Position numbers and translations under genes: made by a program. A DNA stretch of 64,000 nucleotides from Phaeosaccion multiseriatum (lineage: Eukaryota > Protista > Ochrophyta, other classes). Position 1 is the stretch's first letter; every line of letters begins with the position of its first letter. Shown here piece after piece: positions 9,573-64,000 of the stretch. The stretch spans positions 1,984,001 to 2,048,000 of the forward strand of contig OZ218961.1 in the NCBI GenBank assembly GCA_965112735.1, given 5' to 3'. Under the pieces are notes generated by a model. It saw only the letters and a program-made list of their open reading frames with translations, made no database searches and was not told the DNA's origin.

Positions 9573-9840
9573 TCGTTTGTGTGGGGTGGGGAGACGAAGC
9601 ATCATCGTCAGTGGCCAAGAGAGCCGCGGCCGCGCTGTCGGGAGGTGAGGAGGTGTAGACCCCACCGCTGCATCTGGGTGCTATTGTGGAGGGTGGCCTT
9701 GCTCACCACCACCCGCCAACTGTGAGAGGTTCAAGTAGAGCCACAGGGGTTACCACTCCGGTGCGACTCACTTGCGCGACGATGCCCTGTGAGTCGGAGG
9801 TGTACAGACAAGGGAGGGAGGGAGGGAGTGAGTCAAAGGG
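9573..9840 (-). pseudogene. Small remnant of a third ligase copy (part of exon 7 plus flanking intron, fused to ligase-downstream-like sequence)
   Basis: 9655-9838 aligns to 27209-27416 (GIVAQVSRTGVVTPVALLEPLTVGG, then a -1 frameshift and TGA). 9573-9646 resembles 15527-15630 and 24532-24635. Confidence 0.85.
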
Positions 9841-9998
9841 GAGCAGGAGCGGAGAGCGTGTGTGTGACCGCTCTGTCGACGACATCTTCACTTTGCTTCA
9901 GTTTACTCGACCCGACAAGTACCAACACATGACGTCACGCACCCTCCCCTCCCCCCTCACCCCACCTGCACTTAAGATGAGCCCCAAGAGGGTTCCGC

Positions 9999-12900
9999 TT
10001 AATACGCGCTGGCCCGGTGTGGATGGTTGGCAGGCAGCACCTCCTCATGAATCGCTATGGCCTTGCGGTAGAGCGCCTCCGCCTCCTCCGCCTTGCCCTG
10101 ATCGCTGAGAAGGTTACCGAGGTTGTGGTACGACATGGCCAGGGCCGGGTGGTTGGCAGGCAGCACCTCCTCAAAAATCGCCATGGCCTTGCGGAAGAGC
10201 GCCTCCGTCTCCTCCGCCTTGCCCTGATCGATGAGAGCGATACCGAGGTTGTGGTACGACACGGCCAGGTCCGGGTGGTTGGCAGGCAGCACCTCCTCAT
10301 GAATCGCCATGGCCTTGCGGTAGAGCGCCTCCGCCTCCTCCGCCTTGCCCTGATCGCGGAGAATGGTACCGAGGTTGTGGTACGACACGACCAGGTCCGG
10401 GTGGTTGGCAGGCAGCACCTCCTCACGAATCGCCATGGCCTTGCGGTAGAGCGCCTCCGCCTCCTCCGCCTTGCCCTGATCGCTGAGAAGGTTACCGAGG
10501 TTGTTGTACGACTTGGCCAGCTCCGGGTGGTTGGCAGGCAGCACCTCCTCACGAATCGCCATGGCCTTGTGGTAGAGCGCCTCCGCCTCCTCCGCCTTGC
10601 CCTGATCGCGGAGAATGGTACCGAGGTTGTTGTATGAGTCAGCCAGGTCCGGGTGGTTGGCAGGCAGCACCTCCTCACGAATCGCCATGGCCTTGCGGTA
10701 GAGCGCCTCCGCCTCCTCCGCCTTGCCCTGATCGCGGAGAATGGTACCGAGGTTGTTGTACGACATGGCCAGGTCCGGGTGGTTGGCAGGCAGCACCTCC
10801 TCATGAATCGCCATGGCCTTGCGGAAGAGCGCCTCCGTCTCCTCCGCCTTGCCCTGATCGCGGAGAATGGTACCGAGGTTGTTGTATGAGTCAGCCAGGT
10901 CCGGGTGGTTGGCACGCAGCACCTCCTCACGAATCGCCATGGCCTTGCGGTAGAGCGCCTCCGCCTCCTCCGCCTTGCCCTGATCGCGGAGAATGGTACC
11001 GAGGTTGTTGTACGACATGGCCAGGTCCGGGTGGTTGGCAGGCAGCACCTCCTCATGAATCGCCATGGCCTTGCGGAAGAGCGCCTCCGTCTCCTCCGCC
11101 TTGCCCTGATCGCTGAGAAGGATACCGAGGTTGTGGTACGACATGGCCAGGTCCGGGTGGTTGGCAGGCAGCACCTCCTCACGAATCGCCATGGCCTTGC
11201 GGAAGAGCGCCTCCGTCTCCTCCGCCTTGCCCTGATCGCTGAGAAAGATACCGAGGTTGTGGTACGACACGGCCAGGTCCGGGTGGTTGGCAGGCAGCAC
11301 CTCCTCACGAATCGCCATGGCCTTGCGGTAGAGCGCCTCCGCCTCCTCCGCCTTGCCCTGATCGCGGAGAATGGTACCGAGGTTGTGGTACGACATGGCC
11401 AGGCTCGGGTGGTTGGCAGGCAGCACCTCCTCATGAATCGCCATGGCCTTGCGGAAGAGCGCCTCCGTCTCCTCCGCCTTGCCCTGATCGCTGAGAGCGA
11501 TACCGAGGTTGTGGTACGACATGGCCAGGTCCGGGTGGTTGGCAGGCAGCACCTCCTCACGAATCGCCATGGCCTTGCGGAAGAGCGCCTCCGTCTCCTC
11601 CGCCTTGCCCTGATCGCTGAGAAGGATACCGAGGTTGTGGTACGACCCGGCCAGGGCCGGGTGGTTGGCAGGCAGCACCTCCTCAAGAATCGCCATGGCC
11701 TTGCGGTAGAGCGCCTCCGCCTCCTCCGCCTTGCCCTGATCGCTGAGAAGGATACCGAGGTTGTTGTACGACATGGCCAGGCTCGGGTGGTTGGCAGGCA
11801 GCACCTCCTCATAAATCGCCATGGCCTTGCGGAGCAGCGCCTCCGCCTCCTCCGCCTTGCCCTGACGGCTGAGAAGGTTACCGAGGTTGCTGTACGAGCT
11901 GGCCAGCTCCAGGTGGTTGGCAGGCAGCACCTCCTCACGAATCGCCATGGCCTTGCGGTAGAGCGCCTCCGCTTCCACGCCTCTCACCACCATGCTAAAT
12001 AACTCAGCACATGACTCCAAATGGCCTGCTCTACTCAACCCCGTTGTGTGAGACTCTTCATCCTTGAGTGACTTCATCACCACGTCCACCACCATGTCCG
12101 ACGACGACTGAGCGAGCTCCCACGTGCTGCGCCAGTACCCGACATACACATATCCACCACCAAGGCCGTACTCTGTGCCGCCAGCCGTGCCACCCTGTTC
12201 AGAATCACTGTCGGCCCACACGTTCCCAGCGATGCACTCCTGCTGGGACAAGAAGCCAGACTGCCGCTCTACAGCTGTCTTCAAGTCCCACTTGTGCATG
12301 TCTGACTTGATGGTATTGGCAATGAAGTCCAGCTGCAGCTCGTGAGGCACCGCACCGCCATGGCCCCACCTCTCCAGCAGAGATCGATCCGCAAGTTGAG
12401 CCACTGCTTCTGCTACTGCAGGCTCGTCATCGGCCCACAACGACCTCAGCATGAGCTCGCTCGCTCCCCTGCCCCTTGGAAGGACGGCCAGGTACAGATA
12501 ACGGCTTTTGAGTGGGTCAGGCAGTGCGTCGATGCTGAGTGTTAGAACCCTGCCCAGCGCGGCCTTCATATTGTCAATCGATCTATCCTCCCTGTTCTCG
12601 CCGAGCCCTTTCTTGATGTCCTGAGCCAAATCGAGCCAGGCTTGCTCCTCATCCGGCTTGCTCTTTACTTGAGGGAGCGACCCGGCCATTGACAGCGCCA
12701 GTGCGTGCCTCCCGCACCACTCTGCAACAAGCAAGATGGCCCTATACAACCCCTCACCATCATCAGGAACGCGAGTGCCAGCTGTGTCCCTCAACAGCAG
12801 CTGCACCGACGCTTTCTCCTCCATGCGCCCCACCTCCACGCAGTCAGACTCCTCTGAGGGGAGCAGCCCCTTGACTCTCGTCGTGACCAGCAGCTGAAGC

Positions 12901-14847
12901 CCCGTCCTGCGGAGCATGCTCAGAACGTCGGCATCCCACACATCGTCTGCAACGCACAAGCATCTCGAGGAGTGCTTATGAACGTGTCTAGCGATCTCAG
13001 AAGCAAAGTCGGAAGCTTCCCGGAAGTGCTGAATATGTTGCGGCCCTTCGTCCGGCAGCCCAAGCCCCACATTCAGACCAAAGTCGTTCATGAGCGTCTG
13101 CATCAGCGACAGGAGCATGTCAGCTTTCCCCTTCTCATCCCCCTCTTCGGCCCCCTCTTGATGCAGCCTCCCCACACGCAGATACAGAATGCCGTTCGTC
13201 TTGAACTGCTTCCGGACGTCGTCCCTCTCAATCACCGCCCGCGCTAGCTCGGACTTGCCCATCCCCCCCGCACCATGGCACACCACCACGGGGAGGAGCG
13301 GCTCGTCCGGAAGCGGCTGCTCCATCTCCGCAATCTCAATGAGTCTTCGCGCTATCTTGTCCTCGATTTCGGCTCTCGGGATGTGCGTTTTGCTGAGACG
13401 TGGGTGGGCTTGGTGCGGAATGGGCGCTTTCTCCCGTTCCTGCCGTTGGGGAGCACGCTGGAGCAACACGGCATTCATCAGACGATTCGTCTCCATCGCC
13501 GTGTCCTTGCTCTCCGTGACGAGACGATTCGTATCCATTGCCCCGCGCTTGCTCTGCGTGACGATTTGCTTCGTCTCCAGTACCGGTGTCATCAAAAAAA
13601 CAAACAAACAAAAAACAACCAAAATGCTCGCCGTGACGATTTGCTTCGTCTCCATTGCCGTGTCCTTGCTCTCCGTGACGATTTGCTTCGTCTCCATTGC
13701 CGCGGCGAACACCTGAGAGGCCATGAAGTTGCTCAAAGTCGACTGAAGCGCGTCTTTGAGCTTCTCAATGTTCCCTTGGAGCGTGGAGGTATTCAGGAAC
13801 TTACGCAGACAGTTCCCAACCAAGAAGTCTTCCGAGATGCCAAACAGTTCTTCCTGCAATGCGTGTAGCGCCTTTCGCAGAGAGCCTCGAATGGTCGAAT
13901 CGGCAGCACCTTCTTGCAAACGCCCCATTTTCTCCACAAAATCTGTCATCTCCTTGGCCTGGACCATTTTCTGCACAAGCTGGAGTAGGTCTTGCTTGGC
14001 GGCTTGTAGCTGCTCATGCTTCAACCAAAGCCCAAACAGAAGGTCGAAGGCCGGCCCGATGCCTGGCACCTCCTGGGCGAACTTGTTGGTCACGTCAACC
14101 ACAACCTTGAGAGCCTGTCCGACCAGGGCAGGAGAGCTGTCCAGCGTTTCCAGCGTTTGAATCAGGCGAGGAGCGCTGTCATTCTTTGATATCATGCTAG
14201 CGAAGTACTCCTCGGCAGCTGTTGCCGTGTGCTCTCCCTCGGCAGGGAACTCCAATCTCCACGTTTTCACGTCAAAACTGCTCTTGTTCTCGGACACAGA
14301 GGCTGAGATGAGCACCAGGCAACCTTGCCCCGGGATTTTTCTGCTCGGAAACACCTGCCAAGGGTTGGTCAAGAGGCAGGCACGCAATATACAAAGCGAG
14401 TGCATCAGCCAGTGACACTTCATTTGAGAGGGAGTGCTTACAGAGAAGGGGGTGGTGGTGTAGGCTATGTGCAGAGAGAAGGTAGCCGAGGGAGGCCACT
14501 CAAGCTGAAGAGGCGCTGTAGTTGGAAAGAGCGGTAAGTGCGAGCAGGGGAGGGAGGAAGGGCGGCAAGGACTGCAGGCAGGGCCTCACCTGGATGAGAT
14601 CTTGCAGTGGCATCACTTTCAGGTCCTGTGTGGTCCCACGTTTGGTCTGGCTATTCCTTCTCCAGAGCTTAGTAGATCCGTCAACGAGGTGCAGTGTTCG
14701 TGTTTTGTCCGTCTTTCCGCTCGCCGCCGTCTTCCGCACCTCCACACCTTTCTCGGATTCCAGAGCCTCCTTAAATCTAACCACATCCCCATCCTGAGCA
14801 CCTCCTGTCCCTGCTCCTCCCGCATCCTGGACCAGCGCTGGCTGCAT
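9999..14847 (-). CDS. NLR-like STAND protein 1: PH-like + helical N-terminal domain + 14-aa repeats + NB-ARC + 15 TPR (42-aa) repeats, ~1537 aa
   Basis: join(complement(14590..14847),complement(9999..14354)) with a phase-0 intron CAG|GTGAGG...TGGCAG|GTG. In-frame TGA TAA lie just upstream of ATG 14847. Walker A CHGAGGMGKS, Walker B CVADDVWD, LLVTTR, CGRHALAL (GLPL-like), PHELQLDF (MHD-like), and a kinesin-light-chain-like TPR array. Confidence 0.9.
10002..11939 (-). repeat. 126-nt coding tandem repeat, 15 full units plus a partial (TPR array of NLR-1)
   Basis: Consensus xEEVLPANHPxLAxSYxNLGxxLxxQGKAEEAEALYRKAMAI with an exact 126-nt period from 11939 to 10050. Confidence 0.97.
13478..13701 (-). 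repeat. 42-nt (14-aa, AMETKQIVTESKDT) coding repeat, about 4-5 units, interrupted by a T-rich insert
   Basis: Visible directly in the translation and DNA (gtgacgatttgcttcgtctccattgccgtgtccttgctctcc on +). Confidence 0.9.
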
Positions 14848-15871
14848 CCGTGCCGCTTATCAGCCCGTGCTGCTGCCCTCCTTCAACTGAGCAGCACCTT
14901 GGCAGCACCCTTTGGAAGAAGGGAAGGGGAGAAAAAAAGAAAGAAAGAACGAACGGCCCAGGCCCAGGCGGATACGGTGAGAAACGATGCAGAGGGTAAA
15001 AGCTAATAATAGTGAAGACAAGGCTGACTGCGACTTTGGGGTTGCTAATACCTTGTCCATGCGTCTACTATTTTGTGTTTTCCGTGTCAGAGATCCTGCT
15101 GCTTCAGGGGGTACGATCGTACGAAACCGCCGAGAGTTCAACCTCTGTTTCGAAGTGTCCACCTACCGGGGGGAAAATGAAGCAGGCCGTCTCGGGCCGG
15201 CCGCCGCGGCGCTAGTCGTGGGGTTCTCTGACTCTCTGACAGCAGCCACGCATGCTGTATGCTCCACCGCCGCTCGGCTGCTCAAAGGCATGCCTTGCCC
15301 AAGTAGCAAAAGCTGGGGGGGGGGGGGGGGGGGGCGGGATATCGGGGCGGGCTGTGTGTGGCCCTGCCTGACCCTTTGCTTGCACATGGCTGCGCTCCAG
15401 TGGACTGCCTCACAAAAGAAGTGCCCGTCACATTACAACATTACTCTGCGTCTCAGCCTATCCATTGCTCAGTGACTCCCTCGGTATGAGCTACGAGAAC
15501 TGGGGGGGGCTGGGAAGCGCTGCTTGTCGTTTGTTTGGGGTGGGGAGACGAAGCATCAATGTCAATAGTGCCCCAGCAAGCCAGCGGGCCAATGACTTGA
15601 AGGCCGCGGCGCCGCGGTGTCGGGAGGTGGCTCGATGCTGGACTCGCTCGGTACGCGAAGGGTTCCAAGGGACATGCGCTCCAGTCGTAGCTACGGTGGC
15701 GATTGGCCTGTGGCACGGCCTTCCTCCCTCCCTCCCTCTCTCCCACCCCTCTGCCTACCTTCCTCCATCGAACGCCCCGAAGCAACCCCTCGCTCTGCCA
15801 AGTGCGTGCCGCTGGCTGTACCACGTACCACCAACTGGCAGGCTGTATCACCAACGGAAGTACACCCGCCT

Positions 15872-18508
15872 CTACCCCTCCCCCGTCCCCTCCCAGCTCA
15901 GCCTCCGTAACCACTCCGCCTCACTCACGCACTCCACCCCCCGCTCCTCTGCCTTCTTGAGCTTTCCCCTAGGGTTGCTGCCCACCACGAGGAGCTGAGT
16001 CTTGCCACTCACTCCGCCCGTCACTCGCGCTCCAAAGCTCTCGGCGAGACGCTTGGCTTCGTCGCGGGGCATCCTGAGGCGAGGAGGAGGGGAAGGAGGC
16101 GGACAGACACACACGCACGCACACACACACACACGCAGAGAGAGAGAGAGGGAGATAGGAGGAGACAGCACCACACAAACGACACACAGAGAGAGCAAAC
16201 GGGGTGGTGGGTCGGTTGGTTGGTCGGTATCCCGTATACCACACAAGTAGAAGCATACAGAAGCCTCTCTCCCTCTCTCACAATCGAGCTTCTTCCTCAA
16301 TCTCAATACAATATCGAGCTTCTTCACATCAAATATCGAGCCCCACATGGTACCACCGCACCTCATACCGCACCGTCCTTCCTGCCTTACGTAATCTTAC
16401 CTCTCCAGTGTGCCCGTAAACACCACGGCCTTGCCTCGCAGCCACTCGCCCGTCAGCCCCTGCCCATACGCCTCTGCATCCCTTCCATCCCTCCTCCCAC
16501 TGCTCCCATCCCCCCCACCACTATTATTGGCGAATGTGAGGTGCTGAGCCAACCCCTCCACCACTTCACAGTTGGCAGCGTCGCTCGCAAACTCCACCAG
16601 AGAACCAACTGCCACAGACACCACCCCGGGGATCACACTGAGCCTCGCCAGTACCTTGCTCTGCTCCAGCACTACCGGCGCCGCCCCTGCTGCTGAGTCA
16701 CCAACTGCTGTATCTATCTCTGCCTGCCCCCTCTTCCCCTCCTCCTTCTGCTGCTCCTCTCGCCCCTCACTACAGCCCTCTTTCGTCCCTTCTGTATCGT
16801 CCAGTGCCGCAGCCGCTGCTGTGGCTTCTCTCCACCACTCCTCAAAGTCTCCTCCGTAGGCCTCGGCGGTGAGCTGGGCCGTCTTGGCCCCGAAGTGACG
16901 GATGCCCAGTGCGTAAATGAAACGCTCCAGACGCACTGAGAGAGAGAGAGAGGGAAAGGGAGGGAGAGAGGGGCGGAGACTCACTCAATTCATTCACTCA
17001 CTCACTCACTCACTGATTCACCCAATCACTCAATCACCCTCTCCCTTCTTCCCTCCCTCTCTTCCTCCCTCCCTCCCTCCCTCCCTCCCTCACTCACTCA
17101 CTCACTCACTCACTCACTCACTCATCACTCACTCACCTACTCACGCACTCACTCACTCACTCACTCACTCACTCACTCACTCACTGATTCACACAATCAC
17201 TCAATCACCCTCTCCGTCCTTCCCTCCCTCTCTCCCTCCCTCAACTCACCCTCTGTACGAGCCCTGTCCACAGCTCTGAGAAGGTTGAAGGCTGAGAGCG
17301 GCCCCCACCCGTCCCTCTCGGCCAAGCTCGAAGGGGGCATGGCGGCAGCGAGGGCCGCGTCCCCTGTCAGAGCCTGGGTGGATGGCAGTGGACGGGAGGG
17401 GATGGCAATGGATGTGGAGGGGGGAGGAGGGGGGTGGAGACGGCAGTGGACGGGGAGGGGGGTAGGGGTGGTTAGTTGAGGTAGGGGAGGGGCACGCGCA
17501 CACTTCACACACACGCGTGCGCACACACACACACACACGCACACACACACACACGCACGCACACACGCACACACAATCACGCACACGTAACACACTCGCC
17601 TTCTTGACCCGTGCCCGCTTGCGCCCCTTGCTCTTGGGAGCGGATTTCGCCCCCGCCCCCTCCCCCTCTCCCTCCCCATCCCCTTTCCCTTCCATCTCCA
17701 CCTCCTCTTGCAGCGGCGGTGGCGGTGGCAGAGCAGTGGTCTCTCTCAGCCGGAAGAGGTCGACGGGGCTGGTAACGATGCCTGCGTCAAAGAGCTCCTG
17801 TAGTTTGTTGCCTCCGATGCCCTTAATGTCCATCCCATCACGGCTCACAAAGTGCCTCAGACGCTGCACAGCCTGGGCAGAGCAGCGCAGACCCGCGGGA
17901 CAGCGGGTGGCCACTTCTCCGCCTGCCTCCTCCTCCTCGTCGTCGTCGCCGTCCTCGTCCTTGTCCCCCTCCTTCAGCTGTTGCTGTTGCTGCTGCTGCT
18001 CTTTCTCGACTGGGAAACCCTCGCCTCCTTCTCCCCCCGTGCTGCCCATATGACTGGCCGGACTGCCTTGTATCAGCTCCGTGCCGCAAGCAGGGCAGTG
18101 CGTGGGCAGCCTCAGAGGCGGGCCTCTCGAGTCGGAAACCGAGGCATTATCGACATCATCAACATCGACATCGATATCGACACCAATATCGACCCCGGCT
18201 TGACCTGCCTGGCTCCTCTCCTCGCGCTCCTCCTCAGTCGGCACAACCCTCACCACCTGAGGAATGACGTCACCCGCCCGCCTGACGACGACTCTGTCAC
18301 CCTCACGTAGACCCAACCGCTGCATCTGGGTGCTACACTGTATTGTGGAGGGTGGCCTTGCTCACCACCACCCGCCAACTGTGGGAGGTTCAAGTAGAGC
18401 CACAGGGGCTACCACTCCGGTGCGACTCACTTGCGCGACGATGCCCTGTGAGTCGGAGGTGTACAGACAAGGGAGGGAGGGAGGGAGGGAGGGAGGGAGT
18501 CAAAGAGA
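15872..18508 (-). pseudogene. 5'-truncated duplicate of the NAD+-dependent DNA ligase (OB, Zn finger, HhH and BRCT exons only)
   Basis: Near-identical to 24948-27416 but lacks the adenylation domain. A -1 deletion (~18371) gives GGG TGG TGG TGA, and there is a 7-nt insertion at ~18336. Downstream exons 17600-18325, 17250-17373, 16401-16935 and 15872-16073 stay open and keep their splice sites. Confidence 0.88.
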
Positions 18509-18665
18509 GCAGGAGCGGAGAGCGTGTGTGTGACCGCTTTGTCGACGACATCTTCACTTTGCTTCAGTTTACTCGGACCCGACAAGTACCAACACATGAC
18601 GTCACGCACCCTCCCCTCCCCCCTCACCCCACCTGCATTTAAAATGAGCCTCAAGAGGGTTCCGC

Positions 18666-21600
18666 TTAATACGCGCTGGCCCGGTGCGGATGGTTGGCAG
18701 ACACCGCCCCCTCACCAATCGCCATCGCCTTCCGGTAGAGCGCCTCCGCCTCCTCCGCCTTGCCCTGATCGCTGAGAAGGTTACCGAGGTTGCTGTACGA
18801 CATGGCCAGGTCCGGGTGGTTGGCAGGCAGCACCTCCTCAAAAATCGCCATGGCCTTGCGGTAGAGCGCCTCCGCCTCCTCCGCCTTGCCCTGCTTTCTG
18901 AGAAATAAGCCGAGGTTGTTGTACGACATGGCCAGGTCCGGGTGGTTGGCAGGCAGCACCTCCTCACAAATTGCCATGGCCTTGCGGTAGAGCGCCTCCG
19001 CCTCCTCCGCCTTGCCCTGATCGCTGAGAAGGATACCGAGGTTGCTGTACGACCTGGCCAGGTGCGGGTGGTTGGCAGGCAGCACCTCCTGATAAATCGC
19101 CATGGCCTTGCGGTAGAGCGCCTCCGCCTCGTCCGCCTTGCCCTGACCGCTGAGAAATAAGCCGAGGTTGTTGTACGACATGGCCTGGTACGGGTGGTTG
19201 GCAGGCAGCACCTCCTCATAAATCGCCATGGCCTTGCGGTAGAGCGCCTCCGCCTCCTCCGCCTTGCCCTGACCGCTGAGAATGGTACCGAGGTTATTGT
19301 ATGACATAGCCAGGTCCGGGTGGTTGGCAGGCAGCACCTCCTCATAAGTCGCCATGGCCTTGCGGTACAGCGCCTCCGCCTCCTCCGCCTTGCCCTGACC
19401 GCTGAGAAGGGATCCGAGTTCGATGTATGAGTCAGCCAGGTCCGGGTGGTTGGCAGGCAGCACCTCCTCACGAATCGCCATGGCCTTGCGGTAGAGCGCC
19501 TCCGCCTCCTCCGCCTTGCCCTGATCGCTGAGAAGGGTACCGAGGTTGCTGTACGACCTGGCCAGGTGCGGGTGGTTGGCAGGCAGCACCTCCTCATAAA
19601 TCGCCATGGCCTTGCGGTAGAGCGCCTCCGCCTCCTCCGCCTTGCCCTGATCGCTGAGAAGGGTACCGAGGTTGCTGTACGACCTGGCCAGGTGCGGGTG
19701 GTTGGCAGGCAGCACCTCCTCACGAATCGCCATGGCCTTGCGGTAGAGCGCCTCCGCCTCCTCCGCCTTGCCCTGATCGCTGAGAAGGGTACCGAGGTTG
19801 CTGTACGACCTGGCCAGGTGCGGGTGGTTGGCAGGCAGCACCTCCTCATGAATCGCCATGGCCTTGCGGTAGAGCGCCTCCGCCTCCTCCGCCTTGCCCT
19901 GATCGCTGAGAAGGGTACCGAGGTTGCTGTACGACATGGCCAGGTGCGGGTGGTTGGCAGGCAGCACCTCCTCACGAATCGCCATGGCCTTGCGGTAGAG
20001 CGCCTCCGCCTCCTCCGCCTTGCCCTGATCGTGGAGAAGGGTACCGAGGTTGTTGTATGAGTCAGCCAGGTACGGGTGGTTGGCAGGCAGCACCTCCTCA
20101 AGAACCGCCATGGCCTTGCGGCTGAGCGCCTCCGCCTCCTCCGCCTTGCCCTGATCGTGGAGAAAGGTACCGAAGTTGTTGTACGACATGGCCAAGTCCG
20201 GGTGGTTGGCAGGCAGCACCTCCTCACGAATCGCCATGGCCTTGCGGTAGAGCGCCTCCGCCTCCTCCGCCTTGCCCTGCTTCGCGAGAAGGATACCGAG
20301 GTTGTGGTACGACCCGGCCAGGTGCGGGTGGTTGGCAGGCAGCACCTCCTCAAAAATCGCCATGGCCTTGCGGTAGAGCGCCTCCGCCTCCTCCGCCTTG
20401 CCCTGATCGCTGAGAAGGTTACCGAGGTTGCTGTACGACCTGGCCAGGTGCGGGTGGTTGGCAGGCAGCACCTCCTCACGAATCGCCATGGCCTTGCGGT
20501 AGAGCGCCTCCGCCTCCTCCGCCTTGCCCTGATCGTGGAGAATGGTACCGAGGTTGTTGTACGACATGGCCAAGTCCGGGTGGTTGGCAGGCAGCACCTC
20601 CTCACGAATCGCCATGGCCTTGCGGTAGAGCGCCTCCGCCTCCTCCGCCTTGCCCTGATTGCGGAGAAGGGCACCGAGGTTGTTGTACGAGGTGGCCAGG
20701 TCCGGGTGGTTGGCAGGCAGCACCTCCTCATAAATCGCCATGGCCTCGCGGGAGATCACCACTGCTTCCACGCCTCTCACTACCATGTCAAATAACTGAG
20801 CACATGACGCCAAATGGTGTGCTCTACTCAACCCCGTTGTGTGAGGCTCTTCCTCCTCGACTGACTTCATCACCACGTCCACCACCATGTCCGACGACGA
20901 CTGAGCGAGCTCCCACGTGCTGCGCCAGTACCCGACATACACATATCTGCCACCAAGGCCGTACTCTGTGCCGCCAACCGTGCCATCCTGTTTAGAACCA
21001 GTGTTGGTCCACACGTTCCCCATGATGCACTCCCGCTGGGACAAGAAGCCAGACTGCCGCTCTACAGCTGTCTTCAAGTCCCACTTGTGCATGTCTGACT
21101 TGATGGTATTGGCAATGAAGTCCAGCTGCAGCTCGTGAGGCACCGCACCGCCATGGCCCCACCTCTCCAGCAGAGATCGATCCGCAAGTTGAGCCACTGC
21201 TTCTGCTACTGCAGGCTCGTCATCGGCCCACAACGACCTCAGCATGAGCTCGCTCGCTCCCCTGCCCCTTGGAAGGACGGCCAGGTACAGATAACGGCTT
21301 TTGAGTGGGTCAGGCAGTGCGTCGATGCTGAGTGTTAGAACCCTGCCCAGCGCGGCCTTCATATTGTCAATCGATCTATCCTCCCTGTTCTCGCCGAGCC
21401 CTTTCTTGATGTCCTGAGCCAAGTCGAGCCAGGCTTGCTCCTCATCCGGCTTGCTCTTTACTTGAGGGAGCGACCCGGCCATTGACAGCGCTAGTGCGTG
21501 CCTCCCGCACCACTCTGCAACAATCAAGATGGCCCTATACAACCCCTCACCAACATCAGGAACGCGAGTGCCAGCTGTGTCCCTGAGCAGCAGCTGCACC

Positions 21601-23851
21601 GACGCTTTCTCCTCCATGCGCCCCACCTCCACGCAGTCAGACTCCTCTGAGGGGAGCAGCCCCTTGACTCTCGTCGTGACCAGCAGCTGAAGCCCCGTCC
21701 TGCGGAGCATGCTCAGAACGTCGGCATCCCACACATCGTCTGCAACGCACAAGCATCTCGAGGAGTGCTTATGAACGTGTGTGGCGATCGCAGAAGCAAA
21801 GTCGGAAGCTTCCCGGAAGTGCTGAATATGTTGCGGCCCTTCGTCCGGCAGCCCAAGCCCCACATTCAGACCAAAGTCGTTCATGAGCGTCTGCATCAGC
21901 GACAGGAGCATGTCAGCTTTCCCCTTCTCATCCCCCTCTTCGCCCCCCTCTTGATGCAGCCTCCCCACACGCAGATACAGAATGCCGTTCTTCTTGAACT
22001 GCTTCCGGACGTCGTCCCTCTGAATCACGGCCCGCGCTAGCTCGGACTTGCCCATCCCCCCCGCACCATGGCACACCACCACGGGGAGGAGCGGCTCCTC
22101 CGGAAGCGGCTGCTCCATCTCCGCAATCTCAATGAGTCTTCGCGCTATCTTGTCCTCGATTTCGGCCCTCGGGATGTGCGTTTTGCTGAGACGTGGGTGG
22201 GCTTGGTGCGGAATGGGCGCTTTCTCCCGTTCCTGCCGTTGGGGAGCACGCTGGAGCAACACGGCATTCATCAGACGATTCGTCTCCATTGCCGTGTCCT
22301 TGCTCTCCGTGACGAGACGATTCGTATCCATTGCCCCGCGCTTGCTCTGCGTGACGATTTGCTTCGTCTCCAGTACCGGTGTCATCAAAAAAACAAACAA
22401 ACAAAAAACAACAAAAATGCTCGCCGTGACGATTTGCTTCGTCTCCATTGCCGTGTCCTTGCTCTCCGTGACGATTTGCTTCGTCTCCATTGCCGTGTCC
22501 TTGCTCTCCGTGACGATTTGCTTCGTCTCCATTGCCGTGTCCTTGCTCTCCGTGACGATTTGCTTCGTCTTCATTAACGTGTCCTTGCTCGCCGTGACGA
22601 TTTGCTTCGTCTCCATTGCCGTGTCCTTGCTCTCCGTGACGATTTGCTTCGTCTCCACTAACATGTCATTGCTCTCCGTGACGATTTGATTCGTCTCCAT
22701 TGCCGCGGCGAACACCTGAGAGGCCATGAAGTTGCTCAAAGTCGACTGAAGCTCGCGTCCGAGCTTGTCAATGTTCCCTTGGAGCGTGGAGGTATTCAGG
22801 AATTTACGCCACCAGCTCCCAACCAAGAAGTCTTCCGAGATACCAAACAGTTCTTCCTGCAATGCGTGTAGCGCCTTTTGCAGAGAGCCTCGAATGGTCG
22901 AATCGGCAGCACCTTTTTGCAAACGCCTCATTTTGTCCACAAACCCTGTCATCTCCTCGGCCTGGACCATTTTCTGCACAAGCTGGAGTAGGTCTTGCTT
23001 GGCGGCTTGAAGCTGCTCCTGCTTCAACCAAAGCCCAAACAGAAGGTCGAAGGCCGGCCCGATGCCTGGCACCTCCTGGGCGAACTTGTTGGTCACCTCA
23101 AGCACAACGCTGAGAGCCTGTCCGAACAGGACAGGGGAGCTGTCCAGCGTTGCCAGCGTTTGGATCAAGCGAGGAGCGCTGTCATTCGTTGATATCATGC
23201 TAGCGAAGTACTTCTCGGCAGCTGTGGCCGTGTGCTCTCCCTCGGCAGCAGGGAACTCCAATCTCCACGTTTCCACGTCAAAACTGCGGTCGTTCGTGGA
23301 CACAGAGGCTGAGATAAGCACCAGGCAACCTTGCTTCGGGATTCTTCTGCTCGGAAACACCTGCCAAGGGTTGGTCAAGAGGCAGGCACACAACATACAA
23401 AGCGAGTGCATCAGCCAGTGACACTTCATTTGAGAGGGGGCTTACAGAGAAGGGGGTGGTGGTGTAGGCTATGTGCAGAGAGAAGGTAGCCGAGGGAGGC
23501 CACTCAAGCTGAAGAGGCGCTGTAGTTGGAAAGAGCGGTAAGTGCGAGCAGGGGAGGGAGGAAGGGCGGCAAGGACTGCAGGCAGGGCCTCACCTGGATA
23601 AGATCTTGCAGTGGCATCACTTTCAGGTCCTGTGTGGTCCCACGTTTGGTCTGGCTTTTCCTTCTCCAGAGCTTAGTAGATCCGTCAACGAGGTGCAGTG
23701 TTCGTGTTTTGTCCGTCTTTCCGCTCGCCGCCGTCTTCCGCACCTCCACACCTTTCTCGGATTCCAGAGCCTCCTTAAATCTAACCACATCCCCATCCTG
23801 AGCACCTCCTGTCCCTGCTCCTCCCGCATCCTGGACCAGCGCTGGCTGCAT
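18666..23851 (-). CDS. NLR-like STAND protein 2 (paralogue), same architecture with 16 TPR repeats, ~1650 aa
   Basis: join(complement(23594..23851),complement(18666..23360)) with the same NB-ARC motifs. It is 113 aa longer than NLR-1: 5 extra 14-aa units, 1 extra TPR and 1 further aa. Confidence 0.9.
18669..20732 (-). repeat. 126-nt coding tandem repeat, 16 full units plus a partial (TPR array of NLR-2)
   Basis: Exact 126-nt period from 20732 to 18717, same consensus as the NLR-1 array. Confidence 0.97.
22270..22704 (-). repeat. 42-nt (14-aa) coding repeat, about 9-10 units
   Basis: Six full AMETKQIVTESKDT-type units precede the T-rich insert, against one in NLR-1. Confidence 0.9.
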
Positions 23852-24947
23852 CCGTGCCGCTTATCAGCCCGTGCTGCTGCCCTCCTTCAACTGAGCAGCA
23901 CCATGGCAGCACCCTTTGGAAGAAGGGAAGGGGAGAAAAAAAGAAAGAAAGAACGAACGGCCCAGGCCCAGGCGGATACGGTGAGAAACGATGCAGAGGG
24001 TAAAAGCTAATAATAGTCAAGACAAGGCTGACTGCGACTTTGGGGTTGCTAATACCTTGTCAATGCCTCTATCCTATCCTATGTGTGTGTTTTTTCCGTG
24101 TCAGAGATCCTACTACTTCCGGGGGTACGATCGTACGAAACAGCCGAGATTCAACCTCTGTTTCGAGATGTCCACCTACCTTTGGCAACACAAGAAGCAG
24201 GCCTCTCGGGCCGGCCAGAAATAGGAAACAGGCCGCCGCGGCGCTAGTCGTGGGGTTCTCTGACTCTCTGACAGCAGCCACGCATGCTGCATGCTCCACC
24301 GCCGCTCGGCTGCTCATCGGCATGCCTTGCCCAAGTAGCAAAAGCCGCTTGGGGGGGGGGCCTGTGTGTGGCCCTGCCTGACCCTTTGCACATGGCTGCG
24401 CTCCAGTGGACTGCCTCACAAATAAAGTGCCCGTCATATTACAACATTACTCTGCGTCTCAGCCTATCCCTTGCTCAGTGACTCCCTCGGTATGAGCTAC
24501 GAGCACTTGGGGGGACTGGGAAGCGCTGCTTGTCGTTTGTTTGGGGTGGGGAGACGAAGCATCAATGTCAATAGGGCCCCAGCAAGCCAGCGGGCCAATG
24601 ACTTGAAGGCCGCGGCGCCGCGGTGCCGGGAGGTGGCTCGATGCTGCACTCGCTCGGTACGCGAAGGGTTCCAAGGGACATGCGCTCCAGTCGTAGCTAC
24701 GGTGGCGATTGGCCTGTGGCACGGCCTTCCTCCCTCCCTCCCTCTCTCCCACCCCTCTGCCTACCTTCCTCCATCGAACGCCCCGAAGCAACCCCTCGCT
24801 CTGCCAAGTGCGTGCCGCTGGCTGTACCACGTACCACCAACTGGCAGGCTGTATCACCAACGGAAGTACACCCGCCTCTACCCCTCCCCCGTCCAGCCAG
24901 CGGCACGCACTTGGCAGGCTGTATCACCAACGGAAGTACACCCGCCT

Positions 24948-30671
<5,724 letters not shown>

Positions 30672-60964: not shown

Positions 60965-61960
60965 TCAGTAGCTCCTACCCCACAGCACCCAACATGTGGC
61001 AGGAAGTCCCGACACGAAGCACTTGGTCCCAGGCTCCAGCGGCGGCGGAGAGAAGGGCTTACAAAGCGTCTTGGCCGCGACTGGGGTGGCGCTCCTTTCA
61101 TCCTCTTCCCCCTCTGCCCCCAGAGCCTCGTCCCTGCTCATGGCCTTGACCTTCTCCTCCCACTCGTCTTGGTCGCACCAAGGTGTCAGGACCATCTTGT
61201 CTTCGTTCAGGCGAGGGACAAAGTCCTTCCACTCGTACACCTTTGTGGGGGGGGGATGGCAAAGGATGGGATGGGGAATGGATGGATGGCAACGGATGGA
61301 TGATGAATGGATGGATGGCAATGGATGGATAGGCAATGGATGGATGAGCACGGATGGCATTGGATGGCGGTAAATGGGGTATTGAAGGGGGTAGAGTATC
61401 GGTGGAGAAGGCGAAGTAGAGGGTACGCGTGCGAGATCAAAGACCGCAGAACATCGAAGACCTCCTTTGAAACAAAAGCACATACAAACTGGAGGAGTGA
61501 TAAAAGCCAAAAGAAAGGAGCGGCTACAAAGCGGTCTGCTCCTCCTTGTCCCTCCTTGTCCCTCCTTCCTCTACTTCTCCTTGCACCTCCTTCCTTTGCT
61601 CCTCCTTATCCCTCCTTCCTCTACTTCTCCCTGTCCCTCCTTCCTCTTCTCCTCCTTGTCCCTCCTTCCTCTTCTCCTCCTTGTCCCTCCTTCCTCTGCT
61701 CCTCCCTGTCCCTCCTTCCTCTTCTCCTCCTTGTCCCTCCTTCCTTACCTTGCAGAGGCATTCGTCCCTCTCCTTGAGAGCCTTGGCAAAGAGGCTTGAC
61801 TGAATGTCCTCAAGCAAGCGAAGACTGGTCTCCTTCAGCTCTGACACTTTGACGTTCATCTTCTCTCCTGTGTCGCGTCGAACAATCACGACCTGCTCAC
61901 TCTCCATGTCGCGGGGCCCGATTTCGATCCTCAGTGGTACACCCTGTTTGAGGGGGAGAG

Positions 61961-61995
<35 letters not shown>

Positions 61996-62103
61996 ACGCA
62001 GACGCATGCAGGCAGATGCATATACGCACGCACACCGCACACGCAAATACCATGCAAACACACATAGACATACACATACACACATAGGCACATACACACA
62101 CGC

Positions 62104-62134
<31 letters not shown>

Positions 62135-64000
62135 ACGGAAAGATGGGACATGAGTTTGTGGGGATTTGGGGGGACAGCTACGTGACTGACTGACTGACTG
62201 ACTGATTTACTCAGTTGAAGAGGAAGTCACTCAGTCACTGACTCAGTCACCCGGCTGCTGCACACGTGTGCGTATCTAAGCCCCCCCCCCCCTCAACAGA
62301 AGATGTGCAAACTCCCCACAGAAAGACATGTCAACTCAGATCTTTCCCAAGAAGACATCTTAATAACCCCCCACAGAAGGAACACATGTTCGCCCCCCCA
62401 AAGAAAAGGGAAGACGTTCTTTTCGTGTACACTAACTACCCTACTGACCCTGACCCTGACGGGAAGAGTCCACAGTTTCATTCTGGATTTTCTACATTGT
62501 ACATGCCCAGATGCTCACCTTCTGCTCCCAGTGATTGTACTTGAAGCCGGCGGTGTAGTTCGTTCGATCGTCCTCCTTCACACGCACCCCGGCCGCCTTG
62601 AGCACGTCGTGCACATTCTTGCTGTACGGGCTGATCATCTCCGGAGGACACTTCTTGCTGATGATGGGAATCACCACCGCTTGTAGAGGGGAGACGCGAG
62701 GAGGCAGCACCAAACCGCGATTGTCCCCGTGCACCATTACGCACACACCAATGCTGCGGGTGGTGATACCCCAGCTCGTCTGAATCGGTCGGGCGGCCTT
62801 GCCGTCCTTGCCCTCGTAGGAGATGTTGAACATATCCCCAAAGCCTGTGCCCAGGTTGTGGCTCGTTGCCCCCTGAATTGCCCGGCCACTCCCAGTGATG
62901 TACGCCTCGACGGTGGTCGTCATGACGCCGCCTGCGAACTTCTCCCCCTCCGTCTTGTACCCAGGAATCACGGGCACAGCAAGCAACTCCTCGTACACCC
63001 TCCGATAGAGCTCCAGCGCGGCCATGACCATCTCCTGCGCTTCCTCCTCCGTCTCGTGGGCCGTGTGCCCCTCTTGCCACAGGAATTCTCGACTACGCAA
63101 GAATGGAGTGGGGTCCTTAAACTCCCACCTGACCACATTGCTCCACTGATTGAGTTTGAGGGGCAGGTCCCGGTGACTCTGGATCCACTTGGCAAAGCAC
63201 GGGTACATGATGGTCTCGCTGGTCGGTCGCACAGCAATCGGCTCAGCGAGGTCCTCCTCCCCCGACCTTGTCACCCATGCTACTTCAGGAGCGAAGCCCT
63301 CGACGTGGTTCTCCTCTGCCTCGAGAGCCTTCTTGCTCACAAAGAGTGGGAAGTATGAGTTGGACACATCGTGGTCCTCCTTGATGCGCGTGTCGAACCA
63401 CCTTTGAATGTGCTCCCACACCTGTTGGTGATACATACAGGGAGGGAGGGAGGGATTGAGGGAGTGAGGGAGTGAGGAAGCGAGCGAACCTCCTCCATTC
63501 CTTCCTTCCTTCCTTCCTTCCTTCCTTCCTTCGTGCATGCGCTCCCCCACCTGAAAGGCCCACGGGCGCAGGATGTAGCAGCCCGAGATGTCGCTATAGT
63601 CGATCATCTCACTGTATGTGATGACCTGTTACAAGTTTCATGACGGACAGATGGGGTTTATGGCGGTTACACTACATGACGGACAGATGGGGTTGTATGG
63701 CGGTTACATTACATGACGGACAGATGCCGTTGTATAACGGTGACAGGTCCAGGTCAGGTGGGGCTGTGGGGACGGGCACTAGTAACAAACGTTACGTACA
63801 TACATACATACATGCATACATACATACATACATACATACATACATACATACATACGTACATACATACACACATACGTGCATACAATAGCTCCTTGGTTGG
63901 TATCGTGCTGGATACTGCTCTAACAAACTGAAACCGCATACCAAACCGAAACTGCACCCTCCAACCACTGACCTGTGTGTACCAGCCCGGGAAGTCCTCC
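60965..64000 (-). CDS. proS: Prolyl-tRNA synthetase (eukaryote/archaeal type), 5'-partial
   Basis: Exons 63973->64000, 63551-63625, 62519-63421, 61749-61943 and 60965-61240. Motifs: [86 protein letters not shown] and terminal WGRSY*. Confidence 0.96.

Follow-up and report, generated by a model that had tools for sequence, protein, structure and literature searches.

Results

The window analyzed here, a 64,000-nt stretch of contig OZ218961.1 from the ochrophyte Phaeosaccion multiseriatum, harbors two intact minus-strand paralogues (gene 1 and gene 2) inside a ~9-kb direct tandem duplication, each unit of which carries one NLR-like gene and one ligase-OB-fold ORF (Table 1). The neighboring gene encodes a prolyl-tRNA synthetase (ProRS). 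The gene pair arose by a very recent tandem duplication, and the joined reading frames are open along 1537 (gene 1) and 1650 (gene 2) codons. The order of the predicted product is a β-rich head, an all-helical domain, a variable 14-aa repeat linker, an NB-ARC domain, and a TPR array.

Table 1. Positions of the duplication, exons, introns, and encoded modules within the window
Feature	Positions	Strand	Details
Tandem duplication	9655..27395	.	units 9655-18499 and 18307-27395, 91-95% identical
Gene 1 ORFs	9999-14423 and 14500-14847	-	
Gene 1 exon 1	14590..14847	-	86 codons, ATG to donor CAG/GT; would hold first half of PH-like segment
Gene 1 intron (predicted)	14355..14589	-	235 nt, GTGAGG...TTGGCAG, phase 0
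Gene 1 exon 2	9999..14354	-	1451 codons plus stop; joined protein 1537 aa
Gene 1 PH-like second half	14172..14354	-	two predicted strands and a helix with AAEEYFASMI
Gene 1 all-helical domain	13701..14183	-	~160 aa, predicted; MLKL_N/HeLo-like reading a lead only
Gene 1 linker	13470..13715	-	14-aa (42-bp) repeats of type ETKQIVTESKDTAM
Gene 1 NB-ARC	12552..13298	-	Pfam E 8.9e-12, 45.2 bits (cut-off 23.5)
Gene 1 TPR array	10002..11999	-	16 units of exactly 42 aa each, single exon
Gene 2 ORFs	18666-23429 and 23504-23851	-	
Gene 2 exon 1	23594..23851	-	86 codons; 2 substitutions vs gene 1
Gene 2 intron (predicted)	23361..23593	-	233 nt, GT...AG, phase 0
Gene 2 exon 2	18666..23360	-	joined protein 1650 aa
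Gene 2 helical domain	22704-23186	-	within exon 2
Gene 2 linker	22273-22705	-	42-bp repeats, 5 extra units (70 aa)
Gene 2 NB-ARC	21345-22112	-	Pfam 43.7 bits (cut-off 23.5)
Gene 2 TPR array	18677-20755	-	17 units

An earlier note on this DNA had claimed that the ORF track splits each gene and that a phase 0 intron unites an 86-codon exon with the long ORF. Coordinates and GT-AG signals agree with this, and the peptides quoted in the note occur within the joined translation. Judging from these signals, the 5′ exon is very probably joined to the long ORF by a canonical intron. Exon 1 begins at an ATG (14847 in gene 1, 23851 in gene 2) preceded by an in-frame TAA, and in gene 1 it reaches, after 86 codons, the donor CAG/GTGAGG (14590/14589), with the acceptor TTGGCAG/GTG (14355/14354) closing a pyrimidine-rich tract and placing the predicted intron in phase 0. 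This style is that of two homology-anchored introns in the adjacent ProRS gene, the downstream one of which is pinned between positions 51 and 52 by an unbroken Pfam HGTP_anticodon profile.

Alternatively, there might be no intron. The start codon would then be the ATG at 14423 (23429 in gene 2) or a Met further inside the frame, the 86 codons upstream would represent either a 5′ leader or an ORF arisen by chance, and the proteins would therefore have no PH-like domain. We regard this as improbable, even though ORFs of at least 100 codons are common in this 58% GC DNA (16 kb contain 87 ORFs that reach 60 aa or more), codon-usage scoring gave no separation of exon 1 from the intron, and conservation of exon 1 is uninformative on its coding status because exon 1, intron, and upstream DNA are all ~99% identical between the copies. 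Also compatible with an unspliced gene are the contigs from the four public runs found to contain the locus, none of which is an RNA run; these contigs resemble genomic DNA and are continuous through both splice sites, with no spliced joints. However, the splice signals, comprising the donor, a branch-like TTGAC, the tract of pyrimidines, and the CAG acceptor, are canonical, in phase, and like those of the verified local introns, and the alternative start would equip a cytosolic STAND protein with a hydrophobic leader rich in Cys and Leu, for which it has no sensible use. Furthermore, read contigs, which hold four 1-nt indel variants within the gene 1 intron, and the comparison of the copies confine frame-breaking indels to 14433-14490, with none in exon 1. 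The two introns differ by a 2-bp indel and the exons by 3-bp indels. Finally, exon 1 alone has PH-clan neighbors, as detailed below.

The presence of an NB-ARC domain after the helical part, and of TPRs after the NB-ARC, was correctly recognized in the earlier note. The NB-ARC matches span profile positions 10 or 19 to 243 of 248. Their motifs are intact, namely GAGGMGKS, LCVADDVWD, LLVTTR, and PHELQLDF, which we take to be the Walker A, Walker B, sensor (TTR), and MHD-type motifs, the last being MHD-like with His-Glu where His-Asp is expected. The dN/dS of this region is 0.46, and its nearest relatives are EukProt proteins with 30% identity, in which a helical N terminus is followed by NB-ARC and TPR. 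The TPR arrays, identified above the cut-offs of Pfam TPR_10/TPR_12, consist of 16-17 KLC-type 42-residue units with an inter-unit DNA identity of 91-93% (~93% in gene 1), and each array is encoded within one uninterrupted ORF rather than with one exon per repeat. Variation between units is concentrated in a few hypervariable positions (entropy above 1 bit at 9/42).

Between the N-terminal module and the NB-ARC, the gene 1 linker contains a 33-nt T/G-rich in-frame insert (13593-13625) encoding a TM-like hydrophobic stretch. This insert counts against the interpretation that we favor below. We dismissed the idea of a small intron around it, since the single GT..AG pair available delimits 45 nt, far less than the 129-575 nt of local introns, and excising this piece fails to rebuild a repeat unit.

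The N-terminal front end of both proteins, ~300 residues ahead of the NB-ARC, lacked detectable relatives. Searches covering 1.84 billion representatives, 5.8 billion clustered proteins, and the JGI metagenome contigs found no sequence relative of the module. An exhaustive phmmer search of 218 aa against the 1.84 billion representatives, a word-indexed search of residues 1-330 within full-length candidates, and tblastn against the remaining window were all blank; Pfam gave no match to any family, including MLKL_N, HeLo, RPW8, and PH; and BLASTP against the helical N termini of the nearest NB-ARC relatives returned only chance-level matches. Of AlphaFold and Foldseek, which the earlier note had proposed as a check, AlphaFold gave a helical prediction at low confidence, and neither could decide the identity of the two folds. 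AF2 models, whether from a single sequence or from a two-paralogue alignment (which has no depth), reached a pLDDT of 42-50, and two Foldseek runs with these low-pLDDT models against the PDB retrieved nothing at E <= 0.001. In a wide fold search with VIA, a poor model gave the ZAR1 CC domain as its top row, inside the noise band, and an atlas shape search with a poor model gave unrelated rows. Because the models are poor, such searches cannot decide on the fold, and with relatives of the front end undetected, its reading as a PH fold followed by an MLKL-like bundle remains a plausible, unproven lead.

The joined product opens with a β-rich, PH-like segment of ~125 aa that is interrupted by the predicted intron. 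In a model of the exon 2 half, AF2 predicts a hairpin of two strands followed by a helix (DSSP E12-20, E27-35, and H44-56), at a low pLDDT of 26-43. By atlas features, exon 1 alone has PH clusters as its nearest neighbors, a weak match (0.82/0.78), and its best ten named matches all belong to the same clan. The second half by itself matched nothing in the atlas, Pfam, or the PDB, no PH-clan Pfam profile matched either of the two halves in separate scans, and phmmer of both halves against the PDB gave only chance matches. The PH-like domain of the earlier note agrees with the low-confidence secondary structure and gained no support from Pfam, PDB sequences, or HMMER. The only positive evidence on the N-terminal module is similarity in language-model embeddings, and a PH fold for the head is a lead resting on the weak match of exon 1.

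For the segment behind the β-rich part, AF2 predicts only helices, with low confidence, and this domain carries an invariant glycine-rich hydrophobic stretch, VPGIGPAFDLLFGLWL. Most of its embedding neighbors are either helical proteins of short length from fungi or clusters of MLKL_N. By atlas features it scores 0.94-0.95 to unnamed fungal clusters and an MLKL_N cluster (0.94 for the latter, with 200/256 features in common), a level attained by shuffled proteins in 1-10 of 100 cases; moreover, 5/10 agreement among its named matches corresponds to "probably wrong" in the atlas calibration. Pfam MLKL_N, HeLo, Helo_like_N, SesA, and RPW8 gave no match even at E up to 10, with HMMER filters that drop weak matches; the helical domain alone found no relatives in sequence searches at E up to 10; and phmmer against the PDB yielded chance matches only, which for this domain and the PH-like halves were VSG, TIM10, and a WD40 "KLW" motif. 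Of the MLKL-like bundle proposed earlier, the all-helical nature held up at low confidence, Pfam, PDB sequences, and HMMER gave no support, and an MLKL/HeLo-like identity is a lead drawn from one embedding search.

These data bear on another explanation, in which the N-terminal module of these NB-ARC-TPR receptors serves as a helical domain peculiar to the lineage, with an adaptor or regulatory role, rather than as a membrane-disrupting bundle, and the head is not a lipid-binding PH domain. Signaling would then proceed by homotypic interaction or scaffolding, like that of CARD, death-domain, or non-pore coiled-coil modules. We judge this somewhat unlikely, but it fits several observations: no sequence or profile ties the module to any death-effector family, structure searches with the poor models return only generic helical bundles, the module lies away from the free N terminus, and its dN/dS of ~1 is compatible with loose constraint. 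Against it stand the fungal and MLKL_N embedding neighbors, at a score that few shuffled proteins attain, and the place of the module ahead of the NB-ARC, where fungal NLRs have their effector domains (PMC12258605). The position of the module is supported as that of the effector domain in fungal, plant, and animal NLRs.

Discussion

The evidence from sequence supports the view that both genes encode NLR-like STAND receptors of the NB-ARC-TPR branch in a stramenopile-type alga. On balance, although by no great measure, we favor the interpretation that they are recently duplicated NB-ARC-TPR receptors with a PH-like head and a helical domain, the output of which would be membrane perturbing. If the proteins work like APAF-1, plant CNLs, and fungal HeLo-like NLRs, the TPR array would keep the ATPase off until a ligand is bound, ligand binding would lead to nucleotide exchange and oligomerization, and the clustered N-terminal helical domains would constitute the output, most likely membrane perturbation by a HeLo/MLKL_N-type bundle. 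The PH-like head might help membrane targeting or mask the bundle. HeLo, MLKL, and CC bundles are usually found at a free N terminus. The helical domain described here is instead preceded by another domain, which counts against this interpretation. A broader reading, which we find doubtful, is that the pair represents a stramenopile-specific class in which a PH-type lipid-binding head, a HeLo/MLKL-type membrane-attacking bundle, and NB-ARC-TPR would unite sensor, switch, and membrane-targeted executioner in one chain, a combination not known to be described for any NLR; such a class would form a small gene family in this genome.

The gene pair bears on how stramenopile algae detect pathogens and on whether they execute regulated cell death. 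The NB-ARC-TPR genes of stramenopiles are candidate receptors, and we found no description of their output end in the literature examined. If the membrane-targeted death module is real, algal NLR-like proteins would join the executioner theme represented by HeLo, MLKL, and CC-RPW8 in fungi, animals, and plants, the PH head would be a new means of aiming a membrane-attacking bundle, and there would be a concrete construct for testing. In the opposite case, the locus keeps its value as a clean case of the very recent birth of a tandem receptor pair, with repeat-focused diversification and an orphan N-terminal domain.

To judge by sequence, the pair belongs with the known stramenopile and fungal NB-ARC-TPR receptors. 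The brown-algal (Ectocarpus) NB-ARC-TPR proteins were reportedly treated as candidate immune receptors by Teng et al. in 2023. They were also put forward as such by Zambounis et al. 2012 (PMC3341825), in a paper that makes no mention of a pleckstrin, effector-domain, or coiled-coil region on these proteins. The similarities are extensive: a stramenopile host, an NB-ARC with a C-terminal TPR array, a TPR unit of 42 aa (PMC3341825), and clustered genes born by duplication, with diversification focused on the repeats. However, unlike the Ectocarpus exon-shuffling clade with one repeat per exon, the arrays described here each lie in one exon, and the NB-ARC is just 30% identical to its nearest database relative.

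In fungi, NLRs with pore-forming helical N-terminal domains (HeLo-like/SesA/Goodbye) have already been described (PMC12258605, PMC13449251), NB-ARC/TPR is the usual NB-ARC pairing (PMC12258605), and MLKL_N is documented on NLR-like proteins whose repeats are highly conserved (PMC13449251). In Sordariales, HeLo-like domains occur mainly on NACHT NLRs rather than NB-ARC NLRs (PMC12258605). The present proteins share with fungal NLRs the tripartite order of helical putative effector, NB-ARC, and TPR, the fungal embedding neighbors of the helical domain, and, with those containing highly internally conserved (HIC) repeats, near-identical repeats with few hypervariable positions. Unlike fungal NLRs, they have no Pfam HeLo, Helo_like_N, SesA, or MLKL_N match, and they possess an additional β-rich head before the helical domain and a 14-aa repeat linker with a hydrophobic insert.

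An amphipathic helical domain of ~150 aa as putative output module of a switch protein is also a feature of the MLKL four-helix bundle (MLKL_N, PF22215), with its atlas feature similarity, and of plant CC/RPW8 domains of ZAR1-type resistosomes, the ZAR1 CC being the top VIA row within the noise band. Unlike MLKL_N and CC/RPW8, the helical domain in this pair is not N-terminal and has no sequence or profile match, and its partner is NB-ARC-TPR rather than the pseudokinase of MLKL or the LRR of ZAR1. The earlier suggestion that the combination is undescribed as an NLR class must therefore be narrowed, since helical effectors and NB-ARC/TPR are known (PMC12258605, PMC13449251), to the PH-like head, which alone would be new as a combination.

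A tandem pair of NLR-like genes

The first finding of this analysis is that the two minus-strand NLR-like genes (gene 1 and gene 2) are very probably a real gene pair. The earlier note had placed NB-ARC and TPRs downstream of an N-terminal module, and Pfam confirms this in both proteins, in which NB-ARC exceeds the gathering score and is accompanied by 16-17 TPR_10/TPR_12 (kinesin-light-chain-type) repeats. Both ATPase domains retain intact motifs (GAGGMGKS, LCVADDVWD and LLVTTR, with PHELQLDF as the MHD equivalent), and the TPR units, which are exactly 42 residues long and 91-93% identical at the DNA level, differ mainly at nine unit positions (8, 15, 25, 28, 31, 35, 36, 38 and 39). The closest NB-ARC relatives are two EukProt proteins of only ~30% identity, with helical regions before NB-ARC and KLC-type TPRs after it. 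The genes are part of a direct tandem duplication that also includes ligase OB-fold ORFs; for the nuclear genome of a eukaryote, a ligase of the LigA type is unusual.

Features of the NLR-like locus and of the tRNA synthetase gene used for comparison (coordinates within the window)
Feature	Position	Strand	Remarks
Long ORFs (gene 1; gene 2)	9999-14423; 18666-23429	minus	ORF search
Upstream 115-codon ORFs	14500-14847; 23504-23851	minus	~80 nt upstream of each long ORF
Proposed introns	14355-14589; 23361-23593	minus	donor to acceptor, 235 nt (gene 1) and 233 nt (gene 2)
NB-ARC/ARC to first TPR (gene 1)	11999-12510	minus	spliced residues about 701-870
33-nt T/G-rich in-frame insert in repeat linker	13593-13625 (gene 1); about 22380-22415 (gene 2)		conserved in both copies
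Direct tandem duplication, ~9-kb unit	9655-18499; 18307-27395		one NLR-like gene and one ligase-OB-fold ORF per unit
NAD-dependent DNA ligase OB-fold ORFs	17246-18325; 26130-27326	minus	profile positions 45-78 (first), 12-78 (second)
Long microsatellites (ACTC)n and (CA)n	16979-17208; 17497-17586		spacer between gene copies
Class II (prolyl-type) tRNA synthetase gene	61746-63607	minus	at least two GT-AG introns, 129 and 575 nt

A probable 5' exon

The signals of a phase-0 intron, which had been claimed to link an 86-codon exon (exon 1) to the long ORF (exon 2), are present in both copies. The ATG of the upstream ORF is preceded by an in-frame TAA, the donor CAG/GTGAGG (slash, splice site) is reached after exactly 86 codons, and the acceptor TTGGCAG/GTG, which meets the long ORF in phase 0, closes a C/T-rich tract that includes a branch-like TTGAC element. 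Joined by script, the exons give open frames of 1537 (gene 1) and 1650 codons (gene 2), and the peptides quoted in the earlier note are found in this translation. As a local standard of intron style we took the prolyl-tRNA-synthetase-like gene, whose two homology-anchored introns are of the same style. The borders of the 575-nt intron (AAG/GTGAGC ... AAACAG/G) are exact, because the Pfam HGTP_anticodon profile continues from 51 to 52 across it, positions 1-51 stopping at the final residue before the donor and 52-90 beginning right after the acceptor, while the 129-nt intron (CAG/GTGGGG ... AACAG/GTG) splits a conserved YILRPW...WEHIQ block. The longer of these introns is rich in (GT)n/(CA)n microsatellite.

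Between gene 1 and gene 2, the intron has a 2-bp indel and exon 2 indels measure either 3 bp or a multiple of 42 bp; in variant contigs from the same sample, four single-base deletions fall within 14433-14490 and none in exon 1. These indels and the local intron style provide fair, if indirect, support for the intron. Conservation is uninformative on this point because the whole 5' region, including the nearly identical intron, is 99% identical between the copies, and codon-usage scoring does not distinguish exon 1 from the intron. Just four public runs, all from a single sample, contain the locus; their assembled contigs cross both splice sites and the upstream DNA without joints, so that these runs behave as genomic DNA. 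Judged from the sequence, the splicing is likely to be as proposed and the 5' exon to be real. The contigs of runs X1, X3 and X4 reveal two more haplotypes of exon 1 within this one sample, with 6 and 4 base differences within 14691-14814 that change 5 and 2 codons, all of them amino-acid-changing and none to a stop, a sign of further paralogues or alleles encoding the PH-like head.

Identity of the N-terminal module

The N-terminal module consists of a PH-like segment spanning the intron (the head) and an all-helical domain. It matched nothing in Pfam, even with E allowed to reach 10 (the PH-like region being scanned as separate exon halves) and had no relative in a word-indexed set of 5.8 billion proteins, by exhaustive phmmer against 1.84 billion representatives or among JGI metagenome contigs, and no further match in the rest of the window. 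PDB sequences gave chance matches only, and comparison of the module with the helical N-termini of the closest NB-ARC relatives showed no similarity. The pattern of strands and helix followed by further helices, described in the earlier note, fits the secondary structure that AlphaFold predicts for the exon 2 part (a helix after two strands, followed by seven or eight more helices), but the tertiary models are unreliable: lacking alignment depth, they have a pLDDT of 42 for 218 aa and of 50 for the 161-aa helical domain modelled from an alignment of the two paralogues. With these low-pLDDT models, Foldseek found no match at E <= 0.001, and a shape search of the atlas (protein clusters compared by language-model features or shape) returned unrelated bacterial rows.

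The positive evidence for the identity of the module is language-model similarity. The helical part scores 0.94-0.95 against unnamed fungal clusters of 142-186 aa and 0.94, with 200 of 256 features in common, against a Mucoromycota cluster annotated MLKL_N, a set that holds 5 of its 30 matches; a score of 0.95 is attained by about 1 in 100 shuffled proteins, yet an agreement of only 5/10 among named matches calls for caution. Exon 1 by itself scores 0.82/0.78 against PH-domain clusters, a level reached by a third of shuffles, and its best ten named matches all belong to one clan; the exon 2 half of the segment has no atlas match. As leads only, we take the spliced segment to resemble phospholipase-C-type PH domains (R-x-L-x-L-x-D-G-x-x-x-L-W, an L-x-D-L-I-x-V strand, C-L-V-L-I and a terminal helix with EEY in place of the EEW of PH domains), and the last helix of the module, with its RKFL...I..L pattern, to be similar to the final part of the MLKL bundle. 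A PH-like fold of the head is about an even call, the helical domain is tentatively a HeLo/MLKL_N-type effector, and the full reading as a PH-targeted executioner is unlikely.

Divergence between the copies

In a Nei-Gojobori comparison of gene 1 with gene 2, dN/dS is 0.46 in NB-ARC, about 1-1.6 in the second half of the PH-like segment and the helical domain, 2.5 in the TPR array, and 0.32 in exon 1 and 0.28 in most of the repeat linker (2 substitutions only in each); it is highest (about 3.6) in the 170 residues from NB-ARC to the TPRs, with 19 non-synonymous and ~2 synonymous differences, and, given the small counts and probable gene conversion, we read these ratios only as suggesting a constrained ATPase with diversifying ends. 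The linker, a run of 14-residue (42-bp) repeats, separates the helical domain from NB-ARC and is five units longer in gene 2. Its insert codes for a run of Ile, Leu, Val, Phe and Cys residues and, taken together with its flanks, reaches a Kyte-Doolittle mean of 2.5 over 19 residues, a value typical of transmembrane segments. No normal intron can be fitted at this site; a tolerated microsatellite, a membrane anchor and a hairpin are candidate explanations of the insert. Were it to cross a membrane, the usual NLR logic would break down.

Comparison with known NLR-like systems

In Ectocarpus, clustered NB-ARC-TPR genes that evolve by birth and death and have TPR units of 42 aa have been described as candidate immune receptors (PMC3341825), and such genes expanded in the course of brown-algal diversification (bioRxiv 10.1101/2024.02.19.579948). 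Unlike in the Ectocarpus exon-shuffling clade, the TPR array here lies in one exon. Full-text literature combining pleckstrin homology with NB-ARC, NLR and N-terminal domain yielded a single paper, on the role of Rho-family GTPases in immunity to judge from the title. In fungi, pore-forming domains of the HeLo-like and Goodbye-like types are canonical N-terminal components of NLRs and TPR is the usual partner of NB-ARC (PMC12258605), and highly internally conserved repeats combined with MLKL_N heads have been illustrated for NLR-like proteins across lineages (PMC13449251). The helical-effector/NB-ARC/TPR layout is therefore already known, and the new element of the combination would be the PH-like head alone.
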